Of a DNA stretch of 64,000 nucleotides, positions 5,775 to 63,120 are shown piece by piece; position 1 is the stretch's first letter, and each line of letters starts with the position of its first letter. The notes under the pieces were generated by a model. That model had not been told where the DNA came from. It did no database searches and saw only the letters and a list, made by a program, of their open reading frames with translations. Location of the stretch: positions 806,001 through 870,000 of the forward strand of contig OZ025653.1 of NCBI GenBank assembly GCA_964019335.1, read 5' to 3'. The stretch is from Diplonema japonicum. Taxonomy: Eukaryota > Protista > Euglenozoa: Diplonemea. Both the position numbers and the translations under genes were made by a program.

Positions 5775-5778
<4 letters not shown>

Positions 5779-5815
5779 ACATTTAAGGGTACCTGCGGTA
5801 TGTGGCAGGACGCCT
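5775..5815. repeat. 41-bp dispersed repeat end with hairpin next to a poly(A) tract; inverted copy at 20825-20865
   Basis: agagacatttaagggtacctgcggtatgtggcaggacgcct matches the reverse complement of 20825-20865 except at its two CpGs. Confidence 0.8.
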
Positions 5816-7425: not shown

Positions 7426-8027
7426 GGGGGTCATATTAGCCTTAAAAACGTCGATGAAGTCACTTTTTTCAGTTTGCCAAAAAAGGGGGTTCTATGTGTT
7501 TTCGGCCAGACAATCGGGTTCATAGGCCCAAAAAAAATAGGTTTTCGCGTAGTTTTAGCCACTTTTTGATGCTTTATTCTGGCCAGAATAAAGCATCAAA
7601 AAGTGGCTAAAACTACGCGAATCAGCAACCTTTAAAAAATTGCCCGCATGGGGTTCCGGGTGGACCTACTCTCACCCCTGTGCCCTATGGTTTTGAGAAA
7701 ATTTCAATTTTTTTTTTCCATACACTCCAACACATGCCAAGAGCCGTGTATATTCCCCGCAACCACCCGTCGGGAAAGAAGAGATCATCTTCAAGGGAGA
7801 ATGGGGTGGATCGTCCCCATATTCTCTACCAGGAGCCTTTTCTTGAACTAAACCGGAACCACATGCAAGCAAAAAAAAAGGTTTTTTTTTTGATTTCATA
7901 GTTTAAAGGCAAATAAAGTGCCAAACACCGGTACCCAGAATCCCGTTTTTCACCTTTTATTAGGCTGTTAGACACATTCTTTGGCAAAACTGAAAAAAGG
8001 TGACATTATCGACCACATATGACCCCC
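7426..8027. mobile_element. Putative MITE with imperfect TIRs (GGGGGTCATAT...ATATGACCCCC)
   Basis: Terminal 11-bp inverted match plus subterminal inverted match gtcgatgaagtcacttttttcagtttgcc (7450-) / ggcaaaactgaaaaaaggtgacattatcgac (7983-8013); no clear TSD. Confidence 0.6.
7544..7621. repeat. Perfect 78-bp spacerless palindrome
   Basis: ttcgcgtagttttagccactttttgatgctttattctgg|ccagaataaagcatcaaaaagtggctaaaactacgcgaa, centre 7582/7583. Confidence 0.97.
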
Positions 8028-14906: not shown

Positions 14907-17032
14907 TCACCAACGCCTACCACGGCCGCCGCCACCGTAACCACCACCGCCGCCGCCGCCGCCGCCCCTGTTGTAGCCTCCGCCGCCGCCACGGCCACCG
15001 TAGCCACCACCGCCGCCCTGGCGGCCATATCCGTCACGGCCGTACCTGCTCCTGTTGTTGTTGCCACCGCCTGACCTGCCACCGCTGGACTGGGAAGCGA
15101 CCTGACGCAAGAACGGGTCAACAGGCTGGTTGGCCTTCTCGAGAACCTGGGGTCATAAGTTTAACTTACTAAAGCAAGCATACCTCGAGCAAGGGCTTAG
15201 CTAAACCGACGTTGGCCGGAGTGAAGAAGCTGTAAGCATCGCCGATGTCACCAGCACGGCCAGTCCTCCCAATCCTGTGCACGTAGTCCTCCAGCTGTAT
15301 TCGTGTAAAATCAAAGAAAAAGAAAAAGAAAGGAAACAACTACCTGATCAGGGAAGTCGTAGTTGATAACAGCAGGCAAGTCACGAATGTCAAGGCCACG
15401 CTGTGCCACATCTGTCGCGATCAGGATACAGCTCTGAGACTTTCTAAACCAGCCCAAAGCGTGGTCTCGCTGCTGCTGGGTCTTGTCACCGTGGATAGTA
15501 AGAGTCTTGATACCGTTGCCCTGGAGGAAATCAGCTAGATTTTCAACGCCCCTCTTGGTCTGAACAAAGATGAGTACTTTGCTCACGTGGCTGTGGATCT
15601 GACCGAGCAAATCAAGCAGTTCCCTCTTCTTCTCCGACTCTTCAACGAACCAGATGTGCTGGCGCACGTCAGCGTTCGCGGCAAGGTCGCTGTACCCGAC
15701 GTTGATCTGCACCCAGTCGTCGAGGAAGTTCTGAGCGAGCTGACGCACCTCCTTAGGCCACGTGGCAGAGAACATGAGTGTCTGCCTGTCAGGTCTAACC
15801 TGGTTCAAGATCGTGGTAATCTGGGGTTCGAAACCCATGTCAAGCATCCTGTCGGCCTCGTCAAGAACCAGGTAAGTAGCCCTCTTGAGGTTGGTTTGGC
15901 CGCCCTCAAGGAAGTCGATCATCCTGCCTGGAGTGGCGATCACGATCTGGGCACCTCTCAGGTTCTTAATCTGAGGTCCCCTCATTGCCCCTCCGTAAAC
16001 GCAAGCAGTGCGGTAGTTCTGGCGACCTGACACCTTCTGGGTCTCTTCATCGATCTGCACCGCAAGCTCTCTCGTCGGTGCAATGAACAAAGCGATAGGG
16101 CCGTCGCCGTGGTTAAGCGGGGGCTGGGTCCCAATGTGCAGGATCGCAGGAACAGCGAAAGACAGGGTTTTCCCCGAACCTGTTTTAGCAATTCCAACAA
16201 GGTTGTTGCCAGACAATGCAATAGGCCAAGACTGTGCCTGGATGGGGGTGGGTTCAACGAAACCACTCTTGCGGAAAACATCAAGGACGGAGTTCGGGAA
16301 CTTTGCTTCGGCAAACGTAAGAATAGGGTTTGGCACAGCATCACCACCCCTGGCAGGTTCGACCGTGATACCATTCGCTTCCCTCCACTGAGCAACGTCA
16401 GAGGGGCTCCTAGATTCTGTGACGGGACTGGGCTCGTACGAGTTCTTTGACACCTTCGTCAAACTCTCGTTCTGCCAGTTGACTTGACCGAGACCCCTGC
16501 CCAGTCCTGCCATCCTGTCGCCTCCCTTGCCACCACCCTGCCAGGTACCCCAGCCAGAACCGGCCGAGGGCTGGACATAGCTGCTGCCTTGCCATCCACC
16601 GGCAGGAGCGGGAGCCGGAGCAGGAGCAGGAGCACCACCACCGCCCGAGCGCCAGCCACCAGCGGGCTGGGAAAATCCACCAGCACTTCCGCCACCGCCA
16701 CCGCCACCGCCACCGCCTTGCCAGTTGCCACCACTACCGCCACCACTCTGGAAGCTACCAGCACTCGGTGCGCTGAAACCGGGACGTCCACCACCACTGC
16801 TGCCACCACCCTGCCATCCCTGGCTTGAGCCTTGGTTGAAGCCGCCCTGGGCAAAGCCACTGCCACTCTGAGCGAAAGCCTCACCACCGCTGGGTGCTTC
16901 CCATCCCTGAGCACTCGGTCCTGGCATGCCTGCACCACCTTTGACACCAGTGGTAACCGGCGGCATGCCAGTGGCACCACTGGCACCGCCACCACCACTA
17001 CCACCGCCACCTGCTTGGACCCAGCTTGTCAT
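14907..17032 (-). CDS. DBP2: DEAD-box RNA helicase of DBP2/p68 (DDX5) type; 3 exons 17032-15344, 15294-15184, 15146-14907
   Basis: [50 protein letters not shown]; [10 protein letters not shown] restored by splicing GT-AG introns of 49 and 37 nt; RGG-rich C-terminus. Confidence 0.93.
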
Positions 17033-17574
17033 TTTACTACTTAGAATCTGTGTTGTGATATTAATGAAGAAGGTGCAAGGAATACAAATACATTATTTCG
17101 TGTTCAAGGATAACACGACTTTAAGGGCAAGCCAACCAGACGTAAGTCTGATGGTTGTAAACCTTTTCCCTGCTTTCATGGTATCTTCACCTCGTCTTTA
17201 TCACAATCCTTATCATCTGCACCTTTTCTGTTTTACTTCGTTCCGACTTGATAGCCGCTCCCATCAGGAAGTGGTTCAAGATGCTTACCAGTTACATAAA
17301 AAAGAGAACCCTGTTAAACCATTCAAAAAACAAATGAAAATAACCCCCCTCAAATTAAAATACTATGTCAAGCGGTGCTTATATCGGACGATAAGACTAC
17401 TTGATTACAGGGGGTACACCACAGCCGAGTTGTAGCTTCTTCTGCGTTCCGTGTTGTTTCCTTAATCACTGTGGCCAAGCTGTAGCTTCTTCTGCGTTCC
17501 GTGTCGTGTCCTTAATGTGTGGTGTTCAGCTCAACCCCAGCCGGGGCGTCCCGGGTAACCAGATTCTGCTCGTG

Positions 17575-17757
17575 CAGGGGTGGGTCGTTCCGTTCCCTTC
17601 CACCAAACCGAAAAGTCGGAGCTTGGCGGAACGGCGGAACCAGCGGAACCGGAACTTGGCGGAACAGGGAATTCCTTACCTTTTTTTTTTTTTTTTTTTT
17701 TTTTTTCCTCTTTGCATCATCAAGGTTGAAAGTGGTGACTATATCACCACAACACTG
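17575..17757. mobile_element. Chimeric MITE (CAGGGGTGGG left end, CCACAACACTG right end, joined at a T-tract); inverted copy at ~22460-22644
   Basis: CAG...CTG termini, subterminal GGAAC repeats, interrupts the host repeat unit; ends do not match each other and flanks show no TSD. Confidence 0.6.
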
Positions 17758-18430
17758 ACAGCACAATATTCCATGTCGTGTCCTTAATGTGTGCAGTGTG
17801 CAGCTCAACACCAGAGCATCTGCAATACATTCCTCCACTCGGGCGCTACCAGTGATGACCAACATGGAGGTCAACAGCGAACAACACATCTGATGTACTT
17901 CTTATATTTCCATATTTCTGTAATCCCCACCACCAAATAACATGAAAGAGGTAAAGGAGACCAGTGACAGGGGGTGCACCTTGGCCGCTTCTGCGTTCCG
18001 CGTCGTGTCCTTAATGCATGCAGTGTGCAGCTCGACCCCAGCTGGTGCCCTAAGTAGTTTACTCATGCAATTTGTTCTTCCACTCAGGGTGCTACAGGTG
18101 ATGACCGGCCAAGTGGATGGAGGAAAATGCCTATTCGTCGTGTTTGTGGTGCCTGCACAAGAACTGTTAACTTGATACAGGGGGGCACTGCAGCCAAGTT
18201 GTAGCTTCTTCTGTGTTCTGCATTGTGTCCTTAATGTGTGCAGTGCGCAGCTTAACCCCAGCCAGAGCAACACAACCCAGGGTAACCAACATTCTGTGCT
18301 CATGCAGTTTGCTGCCAATTCATCACCCTGAGCATCTGCATTATGTTCTCCCACTTGGGTGCTACTGGTGATGACTGACATGGAGGTCAACAGCGAACAA
18401 CACATCTGATGTACTTCTTATATTTCCATG

Positions 18431-18592
18431 CAGTGTTGGTCCAGACCCTTGAGGGACTCAGGGGACAAAGGGAAAAAAAAAAAAAAAAGTTGCAAAACTA
18501 TCAAAAATAATGACAGTGTTTGGGAGAGTCCCGTGAGTCCCGTCCAGGCCCGTATTCCGTTTTAGGGGACGGGACGGGACTGACCAACACTG
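18431..18592. mobile_element. 162-bp MITE, TIR CAGTGTTGGTC, 7-bp TSD TTCCATG
   Basis: TSD at 18424-18430 and 18593-18599; empty site visible in the paralogous copy at 23261-23280 (tatttccatgttatcccc); GGGAC subterminal repeats. Confidence 0.92.
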
Positions 18593-19069
18593 TTCCATGT
18601 TATCTCCACCACCTGAATGATATATATATGAGTTAAAAGAGGCCGGTGTTGGTGGCGCCCTGCACAAGAACTGTCTACTTGATTACAGGGGGTGCACCAC
18701 AGCCAGGTTGTAGCTTCTTCTGCGTTCTGCATCGTGTCCTTAATCACCACGGCCGAGTTGTAGCTTCTTCTGTGTTCTGTGTCGTGTCCTTAATGTGTGC
18801 GGTGTTCAGCTCACCCTAGCCGGGGTGCCCCAGGTAACCAAGATTCTGCACTCATGTGGTTTGCTTGGTGATGACCGATGAGGAGGTCAACAGTGAACAC
18901 ATCTGATGTTTTTCTTATATTTTCATGTTATCCCACCACCTAAAAAAGAAGATAAAGGTTTTTTTCTTTTTTTTTTTTTTTTTTCTCATTGTTGTTGTTG
19001 TTGTTGTCGTCTCTCAGTACCTGTGTAACATCTTTTCTTGTAGACATCTGTTTATACATTTGAACTCTG

Positions 19070-21509
19070 CAGTGATGGGTGAATCCGGTCCGGTCTGGTG
19101 TACCCATTTTACCGGACTGACCGGACTGACCGGATCGGCCGGACTGACCGGATCGGCCGGACTGACCGGACTGACCAGACTCAAAAATTTTCTGCAATTT
19201 TTGACACACCTGCAAACACTTTTTTTTCAAATATTTTTGGACAATGATTTTTTTTTTTTTTTTTCTTTTTCTTCTTCATACCACAGACATGCACAGCTCC
19301 ATCAAGCCATTTGCACCTATCTACTCCGGTGCACTGCAGCTGCAGGTATGTACAAATGTCCGGAAATGTTGTATTTGGATGTAATACAACCCAGCTGTGG
19401 TGATCAATGTGGAACACAGAAGAAGCTACAACCCGGCCGCGGTGAGAGTTAAAGGACCTGCACAAGACTACTTGATTACAGGGGTACACCACAGCCGAGT
19501 TGTAGCTTCTTCTGTGCTCCGTGTTGTGTCCTTAATGTGTGCTGTGTGCAGCTCAACACCAGCCATGGCCCTGGTAACTAAGATTCTGGGCCTGTGTAGT
19601 TTGCTGCCAATTCATCACCCTGAGCATCTGCATTATGTTCTCCACTTGGACCAACATGGAGGTCAACAGCAAACAACACATCTGATGTACTTCTTATATT
19701 TCCATGTTATCCCCACCACCTGAATGATATATATATGAGTTAAAAGAGGCTGGTGTTGGTGGTGCCCTGCACAAGAACTGTCTGCTTGATTACAGGGGCG
19801 CACCACAACCAAGTTGTAGCTTCTTCTGCATTCCGTGTCATGTCTTTAATGTGGTGTAGTTTGCTGCCTGTTTGTCACCCTAAGCATCTGCATTATGTTC
19901 TTCCACTTGGGAGCTACCGGTGATGACCGATGAGGAGGTCAACAGTGAACAACACATCTGATGTTTTTTCATGCTATCCCCACCACCTTTGGAATAATAT
20001 ACAAGAGTTAAAGGAGGCCGGTGTTGGCAGTGCCCTGCACAAGAACTGTCTACTTGATTACAGGGGGTGCACCACAGCCGGGTTGTAGCTTCTTCTGTGT
20101 TCTGCATTGTGTCCTTAATCACTGCAGCCGAGTTGTAGCTTCTTCTGTGCTCCATGTCCTTAATGTGTGCAGGGTTCAGCTCAACCCTAGCCAGGGCACC
20201 CTGGGTAACCAAGATTCTGCACTCATGCAGTTTGCTGCCAATTCATCACCCTGAGCATCTGCATTATGTTCTTCCACTTGGGTGCTACCGGTGATGACCA
20301 ATGAGGAGGTCAACAGTGAACAACACATCTGATGTTTTTTCATGCTATCCCCACCACCTTTGGAATAATATACAAGAGTTAAAGGAGGCTGGTGTTGGCA
20401 GTGCCCTGCACAAGAACTGTCTACTTGATTACAGGGGGTGCACCGCAGCCAGGTTGTAGCTTCTTCTGCATTCTGCATCGTGTCCTTAATCACTGTGGCC
20501 GAGTTGTAGCTTCTTCTGTGCTCTGTGTTGTGTCCTTAATGTGTGCAGTGTTCAGCTCAACCCTAGCCGGGGTGCCCTGGGTAACCAAGATTCTGCACTC
20601 GTGTGGTTTGCTCAGTGATGACTGATGAGGAGGTCAACAGCAAATAACACATCTGATGTTTTTCTTATATTTTCATAAAAAGAAGATAAAAGTTTTTTTT
20701 TTTTTTTTTTTTTTTACCAACTTGGTTGAGGGTTTTATACCTAAGGTACCAAGGAGGGTGAACAAAGGGCTGAAGGCCACACCACAGCAGAAAGGTTCAA
20801 TCAAGAGATAGATTGAGACTCTTCAGGTGTCCTGCCACATACCACAGGTACCCTTAAATGTCTCTTTTCTTTTTCTTTTTTTTTTATTATTAAGGTGGTG
20901 GGGATAACTTGGAAATATAAGAAGTACATCAGATGTGTTGTTCACTGTTGACCTCCTTGTTGGTCATCACCAGTAGCACCCGAGTGGAAGAATGTAACAC
21001 AGATGCTCAGGGTGATGAACAGGCAGCAAACTGCATGAGTGCAGAATCTTGGTTACCCAGGATGCCCTGGCTAGGGTTGAGCACACCGCACACATTAAGG
21101 ACACGACACGGAACACAGAAGAAGCTACAACTCAGCCGAGGAGCACCCCCTGTAATCAAGTAGGTAGTTCTTACTTCATTGCATGCCACCTAGTGTTGCA
21201 ATCAAAGCCCCATTTTTTTTCTTTGTTTCTCGTTGTTGTCGTCTCTCAGTACCTGTGTAACATCTTTTCTTGTAGACATCTGTTTATATGTTTGAACTCT
21301 GCAGCAAAAAAAGGGGGGGATGTGGTGTTGTGGTTGTATCTTGTACGGTCCAGTTCAGTCCAGTCCAGTCTGGTCCAGTCCGGTCCGGTCCAGTCTGGTC
21401 CAGTCTGGTCAGTCCGGTCAGTCTGGCATAATTGGGTTGAAATTCACACTGGATCCAGTCTGGTCCAGTCCAGTCTGGTCTAGTCCTAATTAGGATTCAC
21501 CCATCACTG
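19070..21509. mobile_element. 2.44-kb non-autonomous TIR element, 17-bp TIR CAGTGATGGGTGAATCC, 7-bp TSD AACTCTG, inserted into a copy of itself
   Basis: Perfect TIRs 19070-19086 / 21493-21509; TSD 19063-19069 / 21510-21516; empty sites at ~21295 and ~23732 (gaactctgcagcaaaaa); subterminal (TCCGG)n arrays. Confidence 0.92.
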
Positions 21510-21974
21510 AACTCTGCAGCAAAAAAAAAAGGGGGGGATGTGGTGTTGTGGTTGTATCTTGTCCAGTCTGGTTCAGTCCAGTCCAGTCAGTCCAGTCAGT
21601 CTGGCATAATTGGGTTGAAATTCATGCTGGATCTGGTCTGGTCTGGTCCAGTCTGGTCTAGTCCTTATTAGGATTCACCCATCACTGCTTGAAGAAAAAA
21701 AAATTCGATTAGGTAACCACAGCTGGGACCTACTTCAAAGGGAATTTTGCTTATCATCACCCAAAATTAGGCTAAAATTCCAAAAATACCATTCTAAAAT
21801 GAAGCTTGATTTTGTGATTTTCAGGTGGCCATTTAGCCTAAGGAAAATTCCTAAAGTGGTTTTTGAAAGATTTTTTTCAGTCCAAGTGGGGTCAAAACTT
21901 TCCATTGGCTGTTCAGAATTCCATTTTCAGGACCAAATTGGGTGTTCAAAAAAAAAAATTATTTTTTGCCCTCC

Positions 21975-22360
21975 CAGTGTTGTTATGAGAATGAGTTGCC
22001 CCCCTGAGATTTTCGGATTTTTACTTACTTTTTACTTCAGAATATAGTTTAGAGATGTGTATTCCACCTAAACACCTTTCTGAACTTTTTGGTTTGCAGA
22101 AATGGGTTTTTAAGGTGTTTTAAATATAAATTTCATGATTTCTAGCTTTTTCCAGAAAAAAAAATTTGGGGTCAAAAATAGCCAAAGTGACCCCAAGTTT
22201 GGGGTCCCCTGGGAAAAAAAAAATTTTTTTTTGGCCAAAAATTTCCAAAAAAGTCTGTTTTGAGGGTGCTAAATGAGTGGGTCCCTAGAAAAAAAAGATT
22301 TTTTGCCCCCCACCCCCCTGCCCCCCCAGCCCCCCTGGGTTTTTTCCCGTAACAACACTG
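21975..22360. mobile_element. MITE with TIR CAGTGTTGTTAYGRGA
   Basis: cagtgttgttatgaga at 21975 and tcccgtaacaacactg ending at 22360; flanks do not form a TSD. Confidence 0.65.
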
Positions 22361-22509
22361 ATTACACATGCCCAGAATCTTGGTTACCAGGGGTGCCATG
22401 GCTGGTGTTGAGCTGCACACTGCACACATTAAGGACACAACATGGAATATTGTGCTGTCAGTGTTGTGGTGATATAGTCACCACTTTCAACCTTGATGAT
22501 GCAAAGAGG

Positions 22510-22540
<31 letters not shown>

Positions 22541-23978
22541 TAAGGAATTCCCTGTTCCACCAAGTTCTGGTTCTGCTGGTTCCACCATTCCACCAAGCTC
22601 CAACTTTTCAGTTTTGTGAAAGGGAACAGAATGACCCACCCCTGCATGAGCAGAATCTGGTTACCCAGGATGCCTCAGCTGGAGTTGAGCTGAACACCGC
22701 ACACATTAAGGACACAACACAGAATGCAGAAGAAGCTGTGGTGTACCCCCTGTAATCAAGTAGTCTTGTGCAGGTCCTTTAACTCATATATCTCTCACCA
22801 TGGCCAGGTTGTTGGTGTTTCCTTTTTTTTTTCCCCTTTTTTTCTTTTCCTCTTTGCATGCAGTGTGCAGCTTGACCCCAGCTGGTGCCCTAAGTAGTTT
22901 ACTCATGCAATTTGTTCTTCCACTCAGGGTGCTACAGGTGATGACTGGCCAAGTGGATGGAGGAAAATGCCTATTCGTCGTGTTTGTGGTGCCTGCACAA
23001 GAACTGTTAACTTGATACAGGGGGGCACTGCAGCCAAGTTGTAGCTTCTTCTGTGTTCTGCATTGTGTCCTTAATGTGTGCAGTGCGCAGCTTAACCCCA
23101 GCCAGAGCAACACAACCCAGGGTAACCAACATTCTGTGCTCATGCAGTTTGCTGCCAATTCATCACCCTGAGCATCTGCATTATGTTCTCCCACTTGGGT
23201 GCTACTGGTGATGACTGACATGGAGGTCAACAGCGAACAACACATCTGATGTACTTCTTATATTTCCATGTTATCCCCACCACCTGAATGATATATATAT
23301 GAGTTAAAAGAGGCTGGTGTTGGCAGCACCCTGCACAAGAACTGTCTACTTGATTACAGGGGGTGCACCACAGCCAGGTTGTAGCTTCTTCTGCATTCTG
23401 TATCATGTCCTTATCACTATGGCTGAGTTGTAGCTTCTTCTGTGTTCTGTGTCGTGTCCTTAATGTGTGTGGTGTTCAGCTCAACCCTAGCTGGGGTGCC
23501 CCAGGTAACCAAGATTCTGCACTCATGTGGTTTGCTTGGTGATGACAGATGAGGAGGTCAACAGTGAACACATCTGATGTTTTTCTTATATTTTCATGTT
23601 ATCCCACCACCTGAAAAAGAAGATAAAGGTTTTTTTTTTTTTTTTTCTTTTTTTTTTTTTCGTTTCTCGTTGTTGTCGTCTCTCAGTACCTGTGTAACAT
23701 CTTTTCTTGTAGACATCTGTTTATACGTTTGAACTCTGCAGCAAAAAGAAGAGGGGGGGATGTGGTGTTGTGGTTGTATCTTGTCCGGTCCGGTTCAGTC
23801 CAGTCCGGTCCGGTCTGGTCCAGTCCGGTCAGTCCGGCATAATTGGGTCGAAATTCACGCCGGATCTGGTCCGGTCTGGTCCAGTCCGGTCTAGTCCTAA
23901 TTAGGATTCACCCATCACTGCTGTCTGCTACTCTTTTTAAAGTACATTTTCCTTTTCATTACTATCACTACAGGTACT

Positions 23979-60613: not shown

Positions 60614-63120
60614 CCTTGCTGGAACACGACACCCTGGTGCTCTACGAGAAGGCACAGCGTCAACCGGGGACGACAGCGGAGAAGGCAACAAAGATATCCG
60701 GGGGTCAGATGTGGTACGGGAAAAGCTGGCGAAACACCGCGCTCGACTTGGCGAAGAGTCTCGGGATGCCGGAACGCGAAGACCTACCGCACCACTCAGT
60801 CACTCAGAGCGCAGACCTGCAGCTCCCTCCATAGGTCCAACCCAAAGTGGGCTGAGTACACGAAGGAATTGTCACAGAAGAAAGACCTGGGGCATGCTTT
60901 CAGGACGATAAAGACGCTCGATGGTAGGAAGGGCAAAGAACCTGTGGCGCCGCTGATGGCTGGTGAAAGATTACACACCACAGCGACAGAGAAGGCAGAC
61001 GCACTGGTGGACCACTACGCGGAGGCATTTGCACCGACGACATCGCGGTGGTGGTTCATGAGAAAGATGTTGAGAAACTGAACGAGAAGCTGTCGAGGAT
61101 CCTGAGGATCGTGGAGACTTGGTGCTCCTGGAACTCGATGGTGATATCAAAAGACAAGACAGAGTTCTTGCCAGTAGCGGGCATCTCATATCCCCAAAGG
61201 ACCCTAAAAGGGAAGATATCGGCAACCTTTGCGGGGGGTGAAGAGCTCAGGGTAGTTGAAAAAACAAAGCTGCTCGGAGTCACGTTTGAGGAAGACATGT
61301 TTTTCGCCGCACATACGGCAGACGTCTTGAGAAGGGCGGAAAGCAGAGTCAGGCTACTGAGAAGACTGGCAGGAACGAAGTGGGGTTGCAAGAAAGTGGT
61401 AATGAGGGCACTCTACCTCACAATCGTACAGCCAGTTTTCCGTTACTGTCTGGGGGCGTACGGACCTTTCGTGATAGGCGGGAGGGGCACGTACCACGAA
61501 GGAATCCAGAAGCTGCAGTACCGGGCAGCTTTAACGATCACAGGATGTGTAGCGACATCAGAGACATTCGCTACACTAAACGAGGCTGGCTTGTGGACAC
61601 TCGATGCGCTGATCGAACACGACAGTCTACTGCTGTACGAGTCCATCATTAGGAAGGAGAACACAGCTGCCTTTCAAGCTACACAACCCCTGAAGGATCT
61701 GACCAGATACGAGGTACTGTTCCCGAAGAAAACATGGTCAGATCGACAAAGGGAAGCAGCCAGGGCCTACAAGCTCCCAGAGAGAGCGGCAACACCATTC
61801 TCAGGTTATGCCTTTGAGAAGAAGTACAGAGTTACACCTTGGCAGAGATTCGAGGGTAAACTGATACTGGCCCCCTTCCTCGACATACATGTGAAGAGAT
61901 CGGACACCAGTGAAGTCAGAAGGAAAGCAACAGAGGACACTCTGAACGGGCTTATCGAGAAGCACGGAAAAGCCTTCTGCATGATCTTCACAGACGGGTC
62001 ATTGAAGGACGGCAGGAACGGAGGAGCTGCTGCGATACTGTTGCGAGGGGAGAGAAAAGCTTCGTATGGGGTCAGCGGTGGATCCTATACGTCATCCTAC
62101 AGGTGCGAGCAAAGGGCCATAGAGCTGGGGCTGCACCTCGCGACAAACCTCTCGAAGAGAGTGGGCACGAGCCAAGAGATGGTCCTTATTTGCACTGATT
62201 CGCAGTCGGTAATAAGGAGGATGTGCCAGGGGCACCTGTCCGCTGTCTCTGCAGACGAGTACAAACTGTGGCACGAGGTAGCGGGACTTGTAAAGAGAGG
62301 CCACAAAGTGGTCATACAGTACGTACCAAGTCACTGCGGATTCAAATGGAACGAGATGGCGGACAAGAAGGCGAAGGAGACCTGCCGGGCAGTTGCCCAC
62401 GAACAGAAGACCAGCATAGACATCGTGAAGTCACTGGTGAGAAAAAAGGTACTGGCGAGCCACCTCCTCTTCTGGAAAAAAACGGGTGTCAAGGAGACAT
62501 ACCGAGAGCTTTTCGCAGGGAATTTCGAGAAGTTTGAAGAGCTGAACAGGGAACAAGAAGTTGCGATCATGAGGCTGAGAGTGGGGAAGAGCCCCCTCAT
62601 AAGCGGGTATCTACTCAATCCCCCGGCCGATGTGGTCACATGCCACCTTTGTTCGATGCCTCAGACGCTGAGCCACCTCCTGAAAGAATGCCAGGACGAT
62701 GGTAGAGCTGACCAGAGAAGTCAGATCTTCGGTTCCTCCCTTCCTTCGCTCAAGGCCCTACTGTCAACTGACGCCGGGAAAACCGTACAATTCCTGGAAC
62801 AGCAGGGCCTGTTGTGACCAACCGTGAGATATAATCCCCTTTATAAATTATATTATAAACTAAACTTTACTTATATACTTTTCTCTCAAATTATCCTGAG
62901 TTTGAAGCTGTACTGTTATACGACTTCAGACAGCAATTGTTTCTAACTCAATCTCTCGACTCTGGCTTCACTCCTATCCTTTCTTTTCACCTCCCTCCCC
63001 AGTGTCTTCCCTTATTTTCCATTACCAGGCCCCTGACCCCCGCCCCCAGTGTTATTCAAATTTTTCACTCACCTTTCATATAGAAAGAAAAAAGAAAAAA
63101 AAAAAGAAAAAAAAGAAGGA
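60614..63120 (+). mobile_element. Internally deleted ingi/I-group-like non-LTR retrotransposon (linker, RT C-terminal half, RNase H, CCHC knuckle, 3' UTR, A-rich tail)
   Basis: KWAEY..EL...AFRTIK...EKADALVDHY linker abuts DDIAVVV; W.....MVISKDKTE, KLLGVTF, FTDGS, CTDSQS, YVPSHCG..WNEMAD..AK, CHLC...SHLLKEC; ORF ends at 62817. Confidence 0.9.

Follow-up and report, generated by a model that had tools for sequence, protein, structure and literature searches.

CpG-restricted decay of repeats in a strand-switch island of Diplonema japonicum points to domain-confined CpG methylation with DNMT5 as the candidate writer

The analyzed window is a stretch of 64,000 nucleotides from chromosome 6 (0.88 Mb, positions 806-870 kb) of the diplonemid Diplonema japonicum, assembly peDipJapo1.1, whose 62,535,345 bases in 132 contigs constitute the genome searched here. 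Between two unidirectional gene arrays, this window contains an island of short repeat modules (Table 1). Copies in the core of the island have lost most of their CpG dinucleotides to TG or CA with few other changes, whereas copies of the same family beside the first genes are intact; the decay is thus positional. We consider it probable that the domain between the arrays is symmetrically methylated at CpG, or was so until recently, that DNMT5 is the likeliest writer, and that the scar arose by spontaneous deamination of 5-methylcytosine (5mC) and not by repeat-induced point mutation (RIP). An earlier note on this DNA had assigned it to a probable euglenozoan, as the diplonemid host bears out, and had invoked either locus-restricted CpG methylation or an active deamination system. 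The former part of that claim is supported by the CpG specificity, the local confinement of the decay and the presence of a DNMT5 gene; the latter part is taken up below.

The principal pair of copies in the window belongs to a repeat family termed fam1 (copies A and B in Table 1). Positions 17521-17680 align without gaps to the reverse complement of 22539-22698 with 18 differences, 14 at CpGs and 4 elsewhere, exactly as the earlier note had counted; in the second copy, all 14 CpGs of the first read TG or CA, and no CpG is left. The hypergeometric probability that at least 14 of 18 differences fall on 28 of the 160 positions is 1.8e-9, and that of the 14:0 asymmetry is 1.2e-4. One correction concerns the direction of these changes: when the 27 other genomic copies serve as outgroup, 13 of the 14 prove to be losses in copy B, and position 17609 is CG in copy A alone among the 29 copies. 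The two further comparisons were reproduced as described. Over 415 bp, segments 18016-18430 and 22856-23270 differ at 2 sites, each of which has gone from CG to TG in the 22.8-kb copy (at the matches of 18033 and 18106), and the 41-bp repeat at 5775-5815 differs from the reverse complement of 20825-20865 by one CG to TG and one CG to CA change; in both pairs every affected CpG is kept in the outer copy. The former pair is the youngest duplication of the island, and its core arm has lost 2 of 6 CpGs at 0 non-CpG differences, which suggests that the process was active until recently. The reported decay of (TCCGG)n arrays to TCCAG and TCTGG is likewise seen in the core copy of the respective module, as opposed to its edge copy (Table 1).

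The genome-wide comparison with consensus sequences, proposed in the earlier note as a check, gave the same spectrum. For fam1, a first look yielded 1091 genomic candidates, and 29 non-redundant copies were aligned. At the 22 consensus CpG sites these copies carry 273 CG, 162 TG, 141 CA and 4 other dinucleotides, so that 53% are mutated, compared with 44 of 5982 non-CpG cells (0.74%), which are mainly shared subfamily markers; the odds ratio is 152. Three other island families have lost 38-62% of their CpGs at 1.6-6.3% other divergence, and the rate ratios per CpG dinucleotide in the four families are 102, 60, 23 and 15. Not all repeats are affected, because two families of long interspersed nuclear elements (LINEs; 16 and 14 copies) show CpG versus other divergence of 1.8% versus 0.26% and 0.42% versus 0.15%, corresponding to ratios of just 7 and 3. 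Copies of these 1.8-kb elements at 99% identity keep 98-99.6% of their CpGs. The LINE of the window, the palindrome at 7544 and the genes are also spared, in agreement with the earlier note.

The decay affects both strands, again as previously described: TG and CA counts in fam1 do not depart from 1:1 (p = 0.25), and both types occur inside every decayed copy. Every NCGN context is mutated, at 41-79%. Of 274 neighbouring pairs of mutated sites, 128 agree in strand type, compared with 127.6 expected, so that there is no processive action on a single strand. Heavily decayed copies share the TG-versus-CA choice at about 50-70% of their common sites. Since these choices differ between copies, the decay proceeded independently at each locus, in place after insertion, and inheritance from a decayed master copy is rejected on the same ground.

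These properties bear directly on an active process, namely enzyme-driven CpG deamination in bursts, either as a RIP-like defence or by a methyltransferase that deaminates when S-adenosylmethionine is scarce. Such a process would account for copies in which all CpGs are converted and nothing else is changed, and for a best ratio of about 100 per dinucleotide, which is above the mammalian value; moreover, the genome encodes DNMT5 as well as a bacterial-type C5 methylase. Nevertheless, we regard it as unlikely. In the CpG desert, TpA/ApT stands at 0.78 and the substrate index (CpA+TpG)/(ApC+GpT) at 1.37, opposite in direction to Neurospora-type RIP, for which the criteria are >0.89 and <1.03, respectively. 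There is no preference for TCG or any other context, strand-coherent runs are absent, and CpG retention is continuous from 0.95 to 0.00 across the 29 fam1 copies, not bimodal. Copies A and B are mutated 14:0, although RIP would mutate both partners alike, and the LINE families are spared even though their 14-16 copies are 1.8 kb long and 99% identical. Six-frame searches revealed no RID-like, APOBEC_N or NAD1 gene. Thus, Neurospora-type RIP does not fit, given the negative indices, the missing RID-like gene in these searches, the spared LINEs and the one-sided duplicates, and the RIP or AID/APOBEC-like part of the earlier proposal is not sustained.

Spontaneous deamination of a methylated domain is, in turn, consistent with the position of the decay. 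CpG retention along the window is U-shaped, with 0.81 at 17.5 kb, 0.44 at 19.2 kb and 0.82 at 23.65 kb; within the core, the values are 0.13, 0.36, 0.29 and 0.24 over 19.6-21.2 kb, with a drop to 0.05 at 22.4-22.8 kb, followed by 0.14 at 23.1 kb. The observed/expected ratio (o/e) of CpG is 0.05-0.30 over 19.25-23.5 kb, compared with 0.70 for the whole window, and in the desert the o/e of TG+CA reaches 1.7, rising where CG falls. Genome-wide, fam1 copies whose 1.2-kb flanks have a higher CpG o/e tend to retain more of their own CpGs (Spearman 0.56, p = 0.0015). Thus, the target looks to be a chromatin domain, and not repetition as such.

A third explanation, in which assembly or base calling went wrong at modified cytosines, or composition alone produced the pattern without any part of methylation, is highly improbable. 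A systematic miscall of 5mC would indeed yield purely CpG-restricted differences; however, contigs from runs X1 and X4 match 22550-22712, within copy B, exactly and at roughly 1-2x single-copy depth, no alternative letters are listed inside 22539-22698, and TG and CA climb as CG drops. 5mC does not disturb HiFi base calls. The assembly was built from PacBio HiFi reads at 102-fold coverage, with a quality value (QV) of 59.4 (PMC13598402). With a HiFi assembly and agreeing contigs from other runs, which read the decayed copy identically, this copy is real, and a nanopore-type miscall at 5mC is rejected.

Candidate enzymes were sought by six-frame profile searches of an intron-bearing genome, in which negatives are weak. 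PF00145 has five matches: DNMT5, one HhaI-like methylase, two DNMT2-like genes of the tRNA-enzyme type, and a fifth locus (L003), which is typed as DNMT2-like by Pfam and size similarity alone. These five mirror the five DNMTs of D. papillatum (PMC10161547). The DNMT5 open reading frame (ORF) aligns in five stretches to Cryptococcus Dnmt5 (PDB 7r76; E=2e-234), an alignment in which the catalytic Cys (agtvCkdfs) and the ENV motif (vilENV) are conserved; the methylase part of the ORF is 42-49% identical to >1000 proteins, which, among the matches listed, have the same architecture. It is an intact, full-length DNMT5 orthologue and a predicted CpG methyltransferase, and the enzyme search suggested by the earlier note has thereby provided a candidate. 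The HhaI-like methylase has relatives at 64% identity in a EukProt eukaryote transcriptome and at 40-42% on two 0.5-Mb ENA contigs. As the sole cause of the decay this enzyme is unlikely if it shares the GCGC specificity of HhaI, given that every NCGN context is mutated. No RID/Masc1-type gene is among the five PF00145 matches, and the six-frame genome search gave no match for APOBEC_N and NAD1 (the NAD1 control matched nowhere), nor for MBD and TDG/MUG. A single Tet/JBP-family dioxygenase match (C20:468781-469245), within an 897-aa open frame, is consistent with base-J synthesis. On chromosome 36, a fam1-family repeat island starts about 1 kb from a DNMT2-like gene (gene at 98772-99809, repeats from 100906; locus C36:99406-102620).

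We propose the following course of events. CpGs between the two gene arrays would be symmetrically methylated, now or until recently, most likely by the SNF2-coupled CpG methyltransferase of the DNMT5 type encoded in this genome. 5mC would deaminate spontaneously to thymine, and the resulting T:G mismatches would be poorly repaired, so that, site by site, CG would become TG where the top strand is hit and CA where the bottom strand is hit. Repeats landing in the domain core would thereby lose CpGs 15 to >100 times faster than they change otherwise, while edge copies beside the first genes, copies outside the domain and LINEs elsewhere would remain intact. Three elements of this course, 5mC as the cause, DNMT5 as the writer and the persistence of the mark today, are what we infer from sequence.

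The last of these elements meets a further alternative, in which the scar is a fossil of a domain that was methylated in the past and is so no longer, DNMT5 now serving other targets. In its favour, few CpGs are left in the core to maintain. We nonetheless find this alternative improbable, as the youngest duplication (0 non-CpG differences over 415 bp) already lacks 2 of its 6 core-arm CpGs, DNMT5 is intact and full-length, and the family copies span all stages of decay.

Several points weigh against spontaneous deamination of DNMT5-methylated DNA. Two fam1 copies have lost all of their CpGs (22/22 and 19/19) and show no other change; they imply a ratio of at least roughly 170, a rough bound from counts, which would also fit an enzymatic process. 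The mammalian CpG decay ratio is several-fold lower than the ratios found here, whether about 100 or roughly 170 and above. The CpG ratio could come out too high if non-CpG sites are under purifying selection or are homogenised; with the very high values of some copies, either such constraint or an enzymatic contribution retains a measure of plausibility. DNMT5 of Cryptococcus is a maintenance-only enzyme, and a de novo writer is therefore still needed; that the bacterial-type methylase is the de novo partner of DNMT5 is a guess. No UHRF1-like SRA protein was found in the six-frame genome search. Finally, the contigs were matched from four public runs, two of the four from one study, with the library type unrecorded.

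Euglenozoa are the classic base-J lineage, in which the trypanosomatids, the members studied best, have little or no 5mC; diplonemids rank with the most abundant heterotrophs of the sea. The genome paper on D. papillatum lists five DNMTs and predicts a 5mC pathway (PMC10161547, supplement section 8), and it cites van Leeuwen 1998 for the detection of 5mC and base J in Diplonema DNA (as cited in PMC10161547). DNMT5 was also noted in euglenozoans (PMC12344493), and the D. japonicum genome note makes no mention of methylation (PMC13598402). We found no description of a diplonemid methylome or of CpG decay in the searchable literature. The supposition in the earlier note that such a system was uncharacterised in Euglenozoa accordingly fails for 5mC and the DNMT genes (PMC10161547, PMC12344493), and stands for the location of the methylation and its mutational scar. 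What is new is thus where methylation would act and the scar it leaves, together with the arrangement of the repeat family in one, mostly subterminal, cluster per chromosome; 5mC in Diplonema and the DNMT genes of diplonemids had already been published. The scar would provide a sequence-only map of the sites of CpG methylation in a diplonemid, pointing to DNMT5 as the writer.

Work by Huff and Zilberman in 2014 and by Catania and colleagues in 2020 is said to show that DNMT5 of Cryptococcus neoformans maintains CpG methylation at transposon-rich centromeric and subtelomeric DNA. The system proposed here shares with it the orthologous MTase-SNF2 enzyme and a CpG-only, symmetric pattern at repeat-rich landmarks that spares genes. 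However, no chromodomain was detected in the D. japonicum protein and the UHRF1-like SRA factor was not found in its genome; moreover, the genome of D. japonicum is polycistronic, the domain fills a divergent strand switch, and methylation would here be read from its scar. CpG decay of vertebrate Alu and L1 elements likewise turns CG into TG or CA on both strands, is graded with copy age and leaves CpG-rich DNA beside gene starts, like the shores of CpG islands. In D. japonicum, by contrast, the decay is confined to one short domain per chromosome and not spread over the bulk of the genome, and its ratio, up to about 100 per dinucleotide, is several-fold above the mammalian one. Fungal RIP (that of Neurospora, or TCG hypermutation in basidiomycetes) also concentrates C-to-T changes in repeats, whereas D. 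japonicum shows changes in all NCGN contexts, negative indices, no RID-type gene found in the searches, long identical repeats that are spared, and targeting that looks positional and not homology-based. At trypanosomatid strand switches, base J lies at array borders, and centromeres carry decayed retroelements. D. japonicum resembles trypanosomatids in its polycistronic genome, in the degenerate repeats at a strand switch and in the possession of a JBP-type gene; in Leishmania, by contrast, DNMT6 is the sole DNMT and 5mC was not detectable (PMC7463849), and we did not find CpG decay at these sites reported in the trypanosomatid literature examined.

The distribution of the islands along the chromosomes was traced with a conserved 19-mer of fam1 (17662-17680), which has 90 matches on 57 chromosomes, so that the family occurs on at least 57 of 118. 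The matches form one cluster per chromosome, each at most 13.6 kb long, and random clusters would never share a chromosome with a probability of about 2e-7. Clusters lie near chromosome ends, at a median distance of 16 kb from the closer one (p=5e-16 versus uniform position); that of the window is some 50 kb away from the right end of chromosome 6. The occurrence of a single island on each such chromosome hints at a landmark function, such as that of a centromere or of the one zone at which transcription starts in both directions. We offer tentatively, and with more doubt than belief, the reading that each chromosome has exactly one, usually subterminal, CpG-methylated island that would be its near-terminal centromere or the single bidirectional start zone of its diverging gene arrays, with a silent core marked by DNMT5 and with unmethylated CpG-rich edges as transcription start regions. 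If this were true, the organisation of the polycistronic genomes of diplonemids would include 5mC as a structural component. With the putative mark confined to one repeat island per chromosome, and with this island filling a divergent strand switch in the window, the questions raised are whether 5mC is present at the islands, whether these combine silent cores with the CpG-rich start zones of the arrays, and whether they are centromeres.

Table 1. Features of the strand-switch island, control element and methyltransferase genes (positions are those of the window unless another locus is named)
Feature	Position	Strand	Description
Divergent strand-switch region	17033..23978	.	separates two unidirectional gene arrays
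Cluster of short non-coding repeat modules	17393..23920	.	all highly repeated genome-wide; 15 direct and 48 inverted repeat families
CpG-desert core	19251..23500	.	CpG o/e 0.05-0.34 in 500-bp windows, 0.19 overall
Repeat fam1, copy A, island edge	17461..17814	+	17/21 consensus CpGs kept; 1/251 non-CpG changes
Repeat fam1, copy B, core	22402..22760	-	1/22 CpGs kept (13 TG, 8 CA); 4/252 non-CpG changes
428-bp direct duplication, older arm	18003..18430	+	98.4% identity to 22843-23270
428-bp direct duplication, core arm	22843..23270	+	2 further CpGs lost
41-bp repeat, copy in the island	20825..20865	-	both CpGs lost; 5775-5815, outside the island, keeps both
(TCCGG)n-bearing module, edge copy	23650..23928	+	14/17 CpGs kept; 3 non-CpG changes
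(TCCGG)n-bearing module, core copy	21213..21517	+	decayed to TCCAG/TCTGG; 4/17 CpGs kept; same 3 non-CpG changes as edge copy
Two tandem 371-bp units	19855..20596	+	start spacing 371, 92-94% identity; 5/14 and 4/14 CpGs kept
LINE ORF with RNase H, unaffected control	61048..62817	+	RNase_H match; 90/93 CpGs kept at 0.55% non-CpG divergence
DNMT5 ORF, 2098 aa, no stops	L006:3103-9399, chromosome 108 (282,262 bp)	-	DNA_methylase, SNF2 and Helicase_C
Bacterial-type C5 cytosine methylase, 495 aa	L001:1063-2550 (C74:154218-155705)		closest to M.HhaI

The limits of the strand-switch region follow from the ORFs of at least 200 aa, which are all on the minus strand up to 17032 and all on the plus strand from 23979. 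The last minus-strand gene encodes a DEAD-box helicase (15311-17032(-)) with 76% identity to D. papillatum DDX5/17. All bins of the island are repeated in the genome, as judged from contig depth: in run X1, each 200-bp bin of 17401-23000 has a summed depth of 44,000 or more, compared with 844 at the unique segment 17001-17200. The earlier note had described the repeats as DNA transposons, a label that finds no support, since the ORFs of the cluster 17393-23920 have no Pfam domain above cut-off; the 17-mer resembling a terminal inverted repeat is one element end that occurs in both orientations. Long poly-T tracts of variable length stand at the ends of several modules on the plus strand, with poly-A on the minus strand (17676-17706, 18955-18985, 20690-20716, 23628-23660), and the modules may therefore be retroposed rather than DNA transposons. 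When the cluster was searched for the head of a short interspersed nuclear element (SINE), Rfam and tRNA scans gave only two chance-level matches and no tRNA.

The two LINE families used for comparison share about 73% identity, and either family has at least 14 copies at 99% identity or above. Many of their copies are located on chromosomes 52 and 61, the most GC-rich of the mid-sized chromosomes (52.5%; genome note Table 2, PMC13598402). The palindrome mentioned above is a perfect one of 78 bp (7544-7621; 39-nt arms, no spacer) in an AT-rich intergenic stretch, and its CpGs are intact.

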